Of a stretch of 64,000 bases of DNA, positions 28,497 to 39,440 are shown one piece after another. The stretch's first letter is position 1. Each line of letters opens with the position of its first letter. A program made the position numbers and the translations under genes. The notes beneath the pieces were generated by a model, which saw only the letters and a list, made by a program, of their open reading frames with translations, did no database searches and was not told the DNA's origin. The stretch comes from Basidiobolus meristosporus CBS 931.73. Its lineage: Eukaryota; Fungi; Basidiobolomycota. The stretch spans positions 1 through 64,000 of the forward strand of contig MCFE01000196.1 in the NCBI GenBank assembly GCA_002104905.1, written 5' to 3'.

Positions 28497-29783
28497 CTAA
28501 ATCATGGTTTCAGCTAGACTCTTTTGGCCCATCTTGACAAATCTGGGATAGGTGTATCGGAACATCAAGGTGCGGACCTCGCTGAATGCCCTGTCAAAGA
28601 TGTCCAGGCGGATGTCGTTGGACTGGAACCTACGCCGGATCTCTCGCACCGCTGATGCTTCGAGGTTCAGCTCGAACTCTGAGTCAGCCGAGATGAAGGT
28701 GTTGTAGATGCTGTTGATCTCGAGTATCACCCAGGTGGGAAGTTCCGCTGCACTCGAGAGTTCTCGTGTCTTGTAGCGAAGCTTCTGGATGCGCTCGAAG
28801 AACAGAGCATTCTCCACACTGAAGTCACGGAGGGAGAACCGCTTGAACACCTCGAACTGCTGCGGATCCTCGACCATCGACTCGAATGAGGCCATGCTGG
28901 AGCTTCTGCTGCCTCCAGCACCGCCTCGGAGTGCATTGACGGCTGGGAGAACAATGCTGAAGCAGTGGCTGATCATCAAGGCGACCACACTCCAGTGGGC
29001 AGCCGGGAAGATCTTGATCACATCTCTGAGTGATGGCAGTGCAGCGAACAGGATGTACAGGATGAAGGCGATCACACCCAGGGTGAAGTCGGCCATGAGC
29101 TCACGCTTGATTCCGTAGGCATCATCGACACCACGGAGCCAGGTGATGAAGAGAGGGCACAACACGAACACATAGAAGGCGGAGGTGAGGTAGACAGGGA
29201 TGAACTCCCAGCCAACCAGGCAGTTCCCCAAGGCCATGGTCGGGGTGATCTGGAACTTGGTGGTGAACGCTTGGACCAGCAGGGTGAGGGCCATCTGGAA
29301 GGACAAGGCACCGATGATCAGTCGGACAATGTAGTTTGTGGTGAACTTCTCGCGGTGCTTGTAGTACCAGTTCTCATCCAGGACCATGGTAGGTGCGGAG
29401 GTGATGGTGGGTTTCTCTGAGCCGAGATCCACATAGTGATCCGCGCTGGAGCCAGCCACTAGTTTGGCCTGGCTGAAATGGTACAGGAAGGCAAGTCGCA
29501 TGAACCGACCAGCGACCGAGGTGAGCCACAGCGGCATACCAATGGACGAGACCCAGATGTTGACAAAGCAAGGGAAGCTGTCGTAGGTCGGCTCTCGCCC
29601 GAGATAGAGAGTGGTGACCAGCGAGTTACCGATCACCATGAACACCGAGAGGGTGATACTGCGGTAGCGAATGGCCGGCGACTGATACTGGGAGATGAAC
29701 AGGAACGTGGTGGAAATGAGGAAGAAGTTCCACCCAATGGTTACCGGGTAATAGAACTTCTGGGATGTTGTCCAGTTATCCAT
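28497..29783 (-). CDS. 7TM-RGS protein (GprK/AtRGS1-like architecture), copy 1, 428 aa
   Basis: Seven hydrophobic segments and DAYGIKRE, then an RGS box: FKRFSLRDFSVENALF, IYNTFI..SEFELNL, FDRAFSEV..LM...YPRF. Confidence 0.95.
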   Translation of the reverse strand: MDNWTTSQKFYYPVTIGWNFFLISTTFLFISQYQSPAIRYRSITLSVFMVIGNSLVTTLYLGREPTYDSFPCFVNIWVSSIGMPLWLTSVAGRFMRLAFLYHFSQAKLVAGSSADHYVDLGSEKPTITSAPTMVLDENWYYKHREKFTTNYIVRLIIGALSFQMALTLLVQAFTTKFQITPTMALGNCLVGWEFIPVYLTSAFYVFVLCPLFITWLRGVDDAYGIKRELMADFTLGVIAFILYILFAALPSLRDVIKIFPAAHWSVVALMISHCFSIVLPAVNALRGGAGGSRSSSMASFESMVEDPQQFEVFKRFSLRDFSVENALFFERIQKLRYKTRELSSAAELPTWVILEINSIYNTFISADSEFELNLEASAVREIRRRFQSNDIRLDIFDRAFSEVRTLMFRYTYPRFVKMGQKSLAETMI

Positions 29784-30545
29784 TAGTGAGCCAGATATTT
29801 TGGAGACTACTGTGTATAGGAGGATGTAATGTATTTGTGATATTGCAGACATTCCGGTCATCGAGCTTTCTTGTATAGTACGTTAGATTAGAGTATGGAG
29901 TTCACTGCAGGAGCCATCGTGAACGCATAGTATTACTTCGTTCGGCAGGGCACCCTCACAGAAGCTGGGGTCGTTGTACACTGATTTAATCGGGTGGTGG
30001 AGTACCATTCTAACTCGGATTGAGGAAATTACGACCACTTTGAAGGCAAATGTATCACTTGTCCGCGCTTTAGTACATATGATCAAATCAGTCGAATTTG
30101 TTTTATCTTGGAATGAATCTGTAAGAAATGATCCGTTACGCACAACTGCCATGATTCGATTTTCAACTGGGAATTCGCTACCCCGCAATTATTTCGACTC
30201 TTTTCTGCACTCTACGGAGCGGGTCTTAATTTCCCTGAACACATAGATCAGATGACTTCAAATTTGGGAATTAACCTACGCACCACACATGCAACTCTGC
30301 GTGGAGCAGATAATATAGGCGTCGTGCAGCCCAACGCACTTCGGAGTAGCCACCGAGGCATAGTAGGGAGAACTCCGCTTTGCTCTACGTCTGTTTTCTT
30401 TGGCTTTGGATGTACACTTCACCGGTGCGCATTATCTACCCTGCATTGCTTGGTATCTCCAGCTCGATCTGCTTGGTATAAATTCATTTTCGATGCCCAG
30501 ACTGTTCGTACACAACTACCGCAGTCAACTAGTTTTCGATAAGCA

Positions 30546-37508: not shown

Positions 37509-38153
37509 TGATGGTTATTATTTCTACTCTGGAAGAAGCTTGTGGATCTAAGAATTCTATGAAGTTTACTAACTTGAGATGTAGACAATGATCATTCTTC
37601 AGCCATCGAGGCTTATTTTATACTAGGTCAGATACTCAGTGAGACTTTGATGTAGGGGTGCGCTCATGTAGGTATTACTACCTCACAGTAAAATGGGGAT
37701 ATTTCTCACCAACTTTGGGTTACAGTGGTAGTGCTGCTCTCCTATGTATGGAGGCTAGTTTCACCAAGATGTCTTTATCTAAATTGGTAGAGCCATGTCA
37801 GTGCGTATTGCTGAAGATTTTCACGAATAGATGACTTGATGTTTATTAGATTAGTAGATGGATTCGGTGATTCATATCACTATTGCGGTCTGTGCCATTT
37901 ATAAGAGAATCGTGTGGATGGTTGATAATGAGATTCGAGGTTTTCTTCGGGCGACCTACTTCTGTCGTGATCCAAAGATTCATGTATGCTCCGTGCATAT
38001 ATAGTCGCTATATTTGGTAAGTCGAATTTATTGGGGGCTATGCTTATTACACTTGGATTACCAACTTCTTTACGGCACCCCAAGTGGTGGATCCGATCAT
38101 TGGATGGTCAATTAAATAATATATTATCTAGTACTTGGCTATTGTTGAATATC

Positions 38154-39440
38154 TTAAATTATGGTTTCAGCTAAGCTCTTTTGACCCATCTTGACAAACC
38201 TGGGATAGGTGTATCGGAACATCAAGGTGCGGACCTCGCTGAATGCCCTGTCAAAGATGTCCAGGCGGATGTCGTTGGACTGGAACCTACGCCGGATCTC
38301 TCGCACCGCTGACGCTTCGAGGTTCAGCTCGAACTCTGAGTCAGCCGAGATGAAGGTGTTGTAGATGCTGTTGATCTCGAGTATCACCCAGGTGGGAAGT
38401 TCCGCTGCACTCGAGAGCTCTCGTGTCTTGTAGCGAAGCTTCTGGATGCGCTCGAAGAACAGAGCATTCTCCACACTGAAGTCACGGAGGGAGAACCGCT
38501 TGAACACCTCGAACTGCTGTGGATCCTCGACCATAGACTCGAATGAGGCCATGCTGGAGCTTCTGCTGCCTCCAGCCCCGCCTCGGAGTGCATTGACGGC
38601 TGGGAGAACAATGCTGAAGCAATGGCTGATCATCAAGGCGACCACACTCCAGTGGGCAGCTGGGAAGATCTTGATCACATCTCTGAGTGATGGCAGTGCA
38701 GCGAACAGGATGTACAGGATGAAGGCAATCACACCCAGGGTGAAGTCGGCCATGAGCTCACGCTTGATTCCGTAGGCATCATCGACACCACGGAGCCAGG
38801 TGATGAAGAGTGGGCACAGCACGAACACATAGAAGGCGGAGGTGAGGTAGACAGGGATGAACTCCCAGCCAACCAGACAGTTCCCCAAGGCCATGGTCGG
38901 GGTGATCTGGAACTTGGTGGTGAACGCTTGGACCAGCAGGGTGAGGGCCATCTGGAAGGACAAGGCACCGATGATCAGTCGGACAATGTAGTTTGTGGTG
39001 AACTTCTCGCGGTGCTTGTAGTACCAGTTCTCATCCAGGACCATGGTAGGTGCGGAGGTGATGGTGGGTTTCTCTGAGCCGAGATCCACATAGTGATCCG
39101 CGCTGGAGCCAGCCACTAGTTTGGCCTGGCTGAAATGGTACAGGAAGGCAAGTCGCATGAACCGACCAGCGACCGAGGTGAGCCAAAGCGGCATACCAAT
39201 GGACGAGACCCAGATGTTGACAAAGCAGGGGAAGCTGTCGTAGGTCGGCTCTCGCCCGAGATAGAGAGTGGTGACCAGCGAGTTACCGATCACCATGAAC
39301 ACCGAGAGAGTGATACTGCGGTAGCGAATGGCTGGCGACTGATACTGAGAGATGAACAGGAACGTGGTGGAGATGAGGAAGAAGTTCCACCCAATGGTTA
39401 CCGGGTAATAGAACTTCTGGGATGTTGTCCAGTTGTCCAT
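38154..39440 (-). CDS. 7TM-RGS copy 6, intact, 428 aa
   Basis: Start MDNW at 39440, TATTTAAG upstream. Differs from copy 1 only at the penultimate residue (TII versus TMI). Confidence 0.95.
   Translation of the reverse strand: MDNWTTSQKFYYPVTIGWNFFLISTTFLFISQYQSPAIRYRSITLSVFMVIGNSLVTTLYLGREPTYDSFPCFVNIWVSSIGMPLWLTSVAGRFMRLAFLYHFSQAKLVAGSSADHYVDLGSEKPTITSAPTMVLDENWYYKHREKFTTNYIVRLIIGALSFQMALTLLVQAFTTKFQITPTMALGNCLVGWEFIPVYLTSAFYVFVLCPLFITWLRGVDDAYGIKRELMADFTLGVIAFILYILFAALPSLRDVIKIFPAAHWSVVALMISHCFSIVLPAVNALRGGAGGSRSSSMASFESMVEDPQQFEVFKRFSLRDFSVENALFFERIQKLRYKTRELSSAAELPTWVILEINSIYNTFISADSEFELNLEASAVREIRRRFQSNDIRLDIFDRAFSEVRTLMFRYTYPRFVKMGQKSLAETII

Follow-up and report, generated by a model that had tools for sequence, protein, structure and literature searches.

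The stretch of the Basidiobolus meristosporus CBS 931.73 genome considered here, bases 1-64000 of contig MCFE01000196.1 (64,000 nucleotides (nt), hereafter the window, for which record and window coordinates are the same in gene look-ups), contains between positions 28497 and 39440 an array of six copies of a 1287-nt intronless gene, the product of which is predicted to combine seven transmembrane segments with an RGS domain (7TM-RGS). Five of the copies (A, C, D, E and F) lie on the minus strand and one (B) on the plus strand. Copy F (38154-39440, minus strand) is the first of the array; it adjoins a pacifastin-like gene, and its upstream DNA is syntenic with a contig of Basidiobolus ranarum (L004). 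Next come the F-E spacer (37509-38153, minus strand; 645 nt, 39% GC), which is unique and unlike the other spacers, and copy E (36222-37508, minus strand), which we used as the reference. Copy D (34278-35565, minus strand) is bracketed by two near-identical spacers, E-D (35566-36221, minus strand; 656 nt) and D-C (33624-34277, minus strand). Beyond these lie copy C (32336-33623, minus strand), the tail-to-tail C-B spacer (31834-32335; 36% GC, unique), the inverted copy B (30546-31833, plus strand), the head-to-head B-A spacer (29784-30545; 762 nt, unique) and copy A (28497-29783, minus strand), after which an RRM-domain gene occupies approximately 26882-27961 on the minus strand. No Rfam RNA families and no tRNAs were found between 27000 and 41500.

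In the assembly, an intact open reading frame (ORF) of 428 codons is found in copies A, E and F only. In copy B, one extra base ~70 nt ahead of the stop puts the last ~22 residues out of frame as assembled; in copy C, a 1-nt insertion near nt 306 shifts the frame as assembled; and in copy D, which has 1-nt insertions near nt 851 and near nt 880, a run of T lacks one base and the stop is lost as a result. As every one of these lesions is an indel of a single base, an error typical of PacBio consensus sequence, pseudogenes and errors are inseparable from the assembly alone. The public gene models of B, C and D (408, 417 and 471 amino acids, at 30546-31928, 32336-33623 and 34100-35565) bypass the indels, apparently by invented introns or extensions, and deserve re-examination against reads; the public model of copy A (451 amino acids) begins upstream of the conserved ATG.

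A second version of the locus is present in this assembly, spread over two further contigs. One of them (MCFE01001334.1, here L001) carries the counterparts F', E' and D' together with a further copy, X', and matches window positions 41389-34281 at 98.35%; the other (MCFE01001066.1, here L002) contains a portion of B' together with A' and the RRM gene and matches window positions 31288-21360 at 98.86%. Both are collinear with the window, spacers included, and D' is intact. After D', L001 has an unrelated 620-nt spacer at the place where the window has its copy of the E-D spacer. This D'-X' spacer (L001 7103-7722) is without counterpart anywhere in the window, and X' itself most resembles the inverted copy B, with 17 differences over 1072 nt and a shared N-terminal Ser3 variant.

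Pairwise identity among the six window copies is 97.1-98.5% in all blastn comparisons. When copy E was extended by 700 nt of flank and compared with the others, the matches began at positions 699-701 (the ATG being at 701) and ended at 1986-1990 (the stop ending at 1987), so that blastn similarity is bounded by ATG and stop, within 2 nt on either side, in every comparison. The differences are mostly synonymous. Among twelve copies (the six in the window and the six on L001 and L002) there are 75 variable sites, 61 of which (81%) are third codon positions, and the six window copies differ by a mean synonymous divergence (dS) of 0.080 (range 0.06-0.11) and a mean nonsynonymous divergence (dN) of 0.0026, giving a dN/dS of ~0.03. 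The GC content at third codon positions (GC3) is 0.755. A reading made earlier from the sequence alone (the sequence-only reading) had described six near-identical ORFs, one of them inverted, that differ mostly at synonymous sites and lack alignable flanks apart from one recent tandem duplication. The number of copies, their boundaries, the inversion and the synonymous character of the differences all hold, with the amendment that three of the six frames are broken as assembled.

The flanks tell a very different story from the ORFs. Smith-Waterman comparison on both strands of 14 spacers and flanks, those of the second locus version and of B. ranarum included, gave no spacer-to-spacer similarity above that of shuffled sequence, except between counterpart spacers and between E-D and D-C; residual matches of 15-18 nt lie at inconsistent positions. 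The E-D and D-C spacers differ by 1 substitution and 4 indels over ~650 nt (a 99.85% copy), and they are thus the one tandem duplication that the sequence-only reading had allowed for. Over the 40 nt that precede the ATG and the 40 nt that follow the stop, the copies are unrelated from positions -1 and +1 onwards. Simple duplicates with a dS of 0.08 would have flanks that are ~92% identical, yet the spacers score as shuffled sequence, and there is no flank homology proportional to dS. The ORFs are therefore decoupled from their flanks.

One way to obtain such a pattern would be precise cassette copying, in which whole ORFs, start and stop codons included, have recently been inserted into unrelated DNA, with either DNA or RNA as template (for instance by cDNA-mediated replacement). 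The sequence-only reading had put this forward as one of two explanations and had regarded the locus as a candidate for an undescribed system. Similarity that stops within 2 nt of ATG and stop in all copies is what this idea would predict, and the array genes are intronless in a genome in which their neighbours have introns. Yet the junctions look wrong for it. There is no poly(A), no carried-over untranslated region (UTR) and no target-site duplication, as that reading had remarked; in the 40 nt on each side of the copy ends there is also no A-run after the stop and no shared junction motif. Ordinary retroposition was rejected on the lack of poly(A), target-site duplications and UTR carry-over. 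The copies are also confined to one locus and its second version. Proteins at least 90% identical occur only on MCFE01000196.1, L001 and L002, plus one B. ranarum fragment, and the next relatives in B. meristosporus are at most 78% identical, so that the further sharply bounded copies sought elsewhere did not turn up. A site-specific mobile cassette was likewise rejected, there being neither an end signal nor dispersed copies, and scans of the array for RNA families and tRNAs having come up empty.

The distribution of variation along the ORF also speaks against precise pasting. Variable sites number 5 in the first 30 nt and 10 in the last 30 nt, whereas the interior averages 1.47 for a stretch of that length (Poisson P = 0.017 and 3e-6, respectively). 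Per site, paralogs diverge by 0.087 over the first 30 nt and by 0.102 over the last 45 nt but by only 0.0154 between them, in the interior, so that the ORF ends are 6-7 times more divergent than the interior, and at third positions the contrast is between 26-31% at the ends and 4.6% inside. Even the stop codon varies, being TAG in copy A and TAA elsewhere. Wholesale copying of the ORF as one cassette would leave every part of it with the same age, and ends that are the most divergent part of the gene contradict this. Homogenisation instead fades 30-45 nt inside the ORF ends, which means that the apparent exactness of the boundary at ATG and stop reflects amino-acid constraint on the terminal codons. 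The sharpness of the ORF boundary is thus partly illusory, and to that extent the earlier description of homology that runs from the ATG to the stop codon has to be qualified. Together with the shuffling of variants described below, which is not the nested pattern expected of serial copying, these observations make cassette copying very improbable.

Variants inside the ORFs are distributed as a mosaic. In a four-gamete test on the six window copies, 152 of the 276 pairs formed by 24 informative sites were incompatible, with a minimum number of recombination events (Rm) of 16. Coalescent simulations without recombination (2000 runs with 330 mutable sites, under equal rates or strong rate heterogeneity) averaged 8 incompatible pairs under the first of these settings and 23 under the second, and 0 of 2000 runs reached 152. 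A CpG context is found at 22 of 60 variable sites, but hypermutation at CpG was rejected as the origin of the shared variants, since the simulations with rate heterogeneity still fall short of the observed count.

The second version of the locus provides a separate view of the same process. Counterpart spacers differ between the two versions by only 1.06-1.09% (1.09% for F-E and 1.07% for E-D relative to L001, 1.06% for B-A relative to L002), compared with 2.7-7% for the synonymous sites of counterpart ORFs. At 56 of the 74 differences between counterpart ORFs (76%), both states are also found in other paralogs. The ratio of paralog to counterpart differences is 1.25 in the interior and 10.4 in the first 30 nt, and position-specific 5' signatures are common to A and A', B and B', D and D', and E and E'. 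From these ratios we conclude that the ORF ends behave as old sequence bound to a position, and the interiors as a shared pool. The difference between the versions at the D-C spacer fits an ORF-anchored exchange on both sides, by either a long conversion or an unequal crossover.

These results also bear on another alternative, namely that the copies arose by recent ordinary duplications with breakpoints that fell at the ORF ends by chance, and that dS is low through codon-usage constraint and not through exchange. GC3 is high, as such constraint would have it, and duplications without flanks are known in other organisms (PMC3966223). However, at least five independent events would be required, each with both breakpoints within 2 nt of ATG and stop, and both the four-gamete failures and the paralog-derived differences between counterparts need exchange. 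Synonymous sites are also free to change, as comparison with B. ranarum makes plain. We therefore regard chance duplication as extremely improbable, and conservation by codon bias alone was rejected because synonymous sites are saturated between the species.

The B. ranarum sequences further indicate that the family is old. On contig L004, the DNA upstream of the 7TM-RGS copy matches the pacifastin-like gene that adjoins copy F, which makes this copy the positional counterpart of F. In a second contig, L005 (JASJQH010010449.1), a 3' copy fragment is followed by an 857-nt spacer and a 5' copy fragment, and an identical stretch of 111 nt from the 7TM-RGS ORF occupies both contig ends (1-111 and 2145-2255). 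L005 thus looks like a tandem array of identical units that has been collapsed, in contrast to B. meristosporus, where the spacers are unique. Between the two B. ranarum types the dS is 1.6-1.9, and the L004 type stands at a dS of 1.1-1.4 from the B. meristosporus copies. The family was accordingly multi-copy long before the point at a dS of 0.08 at which the B. meristosporus copies coalesce. In blastn searches of L004 and L005 against the window with a word size of 7, nothing matched except the ORFs and one stretch of 99 nt in the pacifastin-like gene upstream of F.

A second, unrelated gene family in the window displays the same pattern. Three intronless genes of the major facilitator superfamily, all on the minus strand and assigned to Pfam Sugar_tr, encode the sugar transporters ST1 (2463-3905), ST2 (7082-8428) and ST3 (14178-15782). 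Within their ORFs, ST1 and ST3 share 98-100% identity; in front of the ATG the similarity drops at once to the random level, and behind the stop it is 70-86%, so that an older duplication is still visible there. ST1 and ST2 share ~270 nt of 5' flank and 114 nt of 3' flank. Identity bounded by the ORF is thus not specific to the 7TM-RGS family, and an older alignable 3' flank beside a homogenised ORF is a further point against cassette copying.

Taken together, the mosaic of variants, the gradient at the ORF ends, the paralog-derived differences between the two locus versions and the pattern in the sugar transporters favour the other explanation offered by the sequence-only reading, an old array homogenised by ORF-restricted gene conversion. 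We consider it highly likely that the six genes form an old local array, the interiors of which have been kept ~98% alike by short-tract interlocus gene conversion acting together with purifying selection (dN/dS ~0.03). Frequent short-tract conversion, with an occasional longer exchange anchored in the ORFs, would homogenise the coding interiors. The flanks would have escaped homogenisation long ago and decayed, the recombining block of homology shrinking to the region under selection. Since a conversion tract has to be bordered on either side by matching sequence, conversion would fade 30-45 nt inside the ORF ends, and from there to ATG and stop the terminal codons would be kept alike only by purifying selection on the protein. 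The molecular route may be heteroduplex formation or synthesis-dependent repair between copies, in mitosis or in meiosis. The array is accordingly a very clean case of an ordinary process and not a new copying system, and the idea that it represents an undescribed one is not supported.

Several observations weigh against this interpretation or limit it. A permutation test of distance dependence of the pairwise homoplasy index (PHI) type was non-significant for the six window copies (p = 0.34) and only borderline with all twelve (p = 0.02-0.08). The near linkage equilibrium of the mosaic fits very many short tracts, and it also fits a shuffling of variants by mis-polishing, the copy-specific variants being those of the assembly consensus. 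The frameshifts in three copies have gone unrepaired by conversion, unless they are assembly errors. Finally, the antiquity of the array is inferred from flank decay, with neutral sites between the species saturated and the B. ranarum contigs being fragments.

The first of these points leads to the possibility that the pattern is an artefact of assembly or polishing, in which reads were mis-assigned among repeats or haplotypes in the PacBio consensus, and the copies are in truth more different from one another or their combinations of variants scrambled. Such an origin would account for a mosaic that lacks distance dependence, for frame-breaking lesions that are all 1-nt indels, some of them in homopolymers, and for a duplicated D-C spacer that has 4 indels for 1 substitution. 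On the other hand, variation that is 81% third-position with a dN/dS of 0.03 points to biology and not to error, unique spacers only 0.5-0.8 kb apart anchor each copy, and the 5' end signatures agree between independent contigs. Moreover, copies that truly diverged would not be mis-assigned, so the near-identity itself must be real and only part of the mosaic could be spurious. We therefore think an artefact quite unlikely as the explanation of the locus.

The occurrence of ORF-bounded homogenisation in two unrelated intronless families within one 64-kb window raises the broader prospect that interlocus conversion anchored in ORFs is unusually intense across the whole genome of B. meristosporus, maybe in connection with the large and possibly polyploid genome of the genus, with part of the conversion maybe templated by RNA or cDNA. 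A contribution of the latter kind would also account for the homogenised genes being intronless. This is a speculative extension to which we assign a low probability.

Local homogenisation of the kind we propose for the array has clear precedents. Duplicated ribosomal-protein genes and TEF genes of yeast undergo concerted evolution by interlocus conversion. In Caenorhabditis elegans, identity limited to the ORF with diverged flanks in col-12/col-13 and in the hsp16 modules has been read as interlocus gene conversion, with the warning that ORF-limited duplications must be excluded first (PMC3966223). At the B. meristosporus array, the end gradient and the mosaic exclude them. The likeness to the converted genes of yeast and C. 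elegans extends to near-identical ORFs with diverged flanks, exchange in both direct and inverted orientation, polymorphisms shared between paralogs and homogenisation limited to the coding block under selection. Unlike those cases, a six-copy array with a second version in the same assembly displays the paralog-derived variants directly, and homogenisation can be seen with unusual clarity to fade out 30-45 nt inside either end of the ORF. Tandem arrays of Trypanosoma brucei provide another comparison: their coding sequences also evolve in concert, but there the repeat commonly extends over the intergenic DNA as well, and homogenisation tends to bypass copies whose UTRs are unique (PMC1855330), whereas the B. 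meristosporus copies are still homogenised although each has flanks of its own. Our literature search found no paper that ties B. meristosporus to gene conversion at this locus, and both the 7TM-RGS family and this species are new to concerted evolution by gene conversion.

In the product of the array genes, Pfam assigns an RGS domain (PF00615) to residues 299-417 (E 9.3e-13), and the N-terminal part has seven hydropathy peaks, at residues 13-31, 43-61, 72-90, 152-170, 195-213, 234-252 and 264-282. An AlphaFold2 model built with 20 homologues has seven long helices, with a mean predicted local distance difference test score (pLDDT) of 82 and a predicted template-modelling score (pTM) of 0.76. 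In Foldseek searches, the N-terminal part matched the transmembrane domains of class C G-protein-coupled receptors (GPCRs), namely TAS1R2/3, mGlu1, CaSR and GABA-B (best E 8.6e-4), and the C-terminal part matched RGS8, RGS16 and RGS4 with a root-mean-square deviation of ~2 A and a target TM-score of up to 0.89. Sequence matches of the RGS region in the PDB were GAIP and RGS10, RGS16, RGS8 and RGS4. Distant relatives in Basidiobolus and Syncephalis combine Pfam 7tm_3 with RGS, and the paralogs P0015 and P0017 carry PF00003. Among 20 family members, E324 and N325 are invariant, and S322, V323, L372 and N373 nearly so; the SVEN motif of the array protein aligns with SEEN of GAIP and CG5036. N373 is presumably the equivalent of Asn128 of RGS4, and together with the E-N pair of the S-x-E-N motif it belongs to the predicted contact residues for G-alpha.

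Judged from its domains and its modelled fold, the array protein appears to be a 7TM-RGS hybrid of the class VI GPCR or AtRGS1 type, and the array proteins are most likely to act as membrane-anchored GTPase-activating proteins (GAPs) for a G-alpha subunit. This agrees with the receptor-GAP fusion resembling GprK and plant RGS1 that had been proposed from the letters alone. An N-terminal 7TM part followed by a C-terminal RGS domain is the layout of the fungal class VI GPCRs GprK, GprR and MoRgs7 and of plant AtRGS1 (PMC10794492, PMC5008803, PMC6405168). In the class VI GPCRs of Aspergillus oryzae, replacement of the E-N pair by AA abolishes function, and the RGS domains have GAP activity in yeast; the array protein keeps this pair, as do the class VI receptors (PMC10794492). 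It differs from the A. oryzae proteins in being shorter, at 428 amino acids compared with ~520-560 or more (as judged from the reported ends of the RGS region). Its 7TM part resembles the transmembrane domains of class C GPCRs, and its likeness to GprK is one of domain layout.

The properties of the array have several implications. ORF similarity in this genome badly underestimates the age of duplications, and it is therefore unfit for dating duplicates or for calling recent expansions. The locus is also a natural example of a converting block that erodes to the selected coding region, with a fade-out that is measurable in both ORF ends, and its two versions allow paralog-derived variants to be counted directly. 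In addition, the placement of what is predicted to be one receptor-GAP protein behind six different promoters suggests a need for dosage or a differential regulation of the same protein.

The surroundings of the array are rich in repeats. A dispersed repeat of ~330 nt, with copies that are 69-89% identical and lie in both orientations, flanks the array on both sides, at 18612-18945, 21436-21786, 22205-22389, 41105-41370 and 44393-44740 in the window, and also occurs at 9929-10278 on L002. The collinearity of L002 with the window ends exactly at this extra copy, which indicates that one insertion differs between the two locus versions. The part of the window from 41000 to 64000 is an AT-rich (37-40% GC), repeat-filled half. 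It contains units of ~370 nt at 47249, 52086, 58499, 60420 and 62897 and, inverted, at 54584, together with longer matches of 72-84% that include 45723-46864 with 56911-58056 and 47294-48630 with 52458-53760; these repeats look like the remains of transposons.

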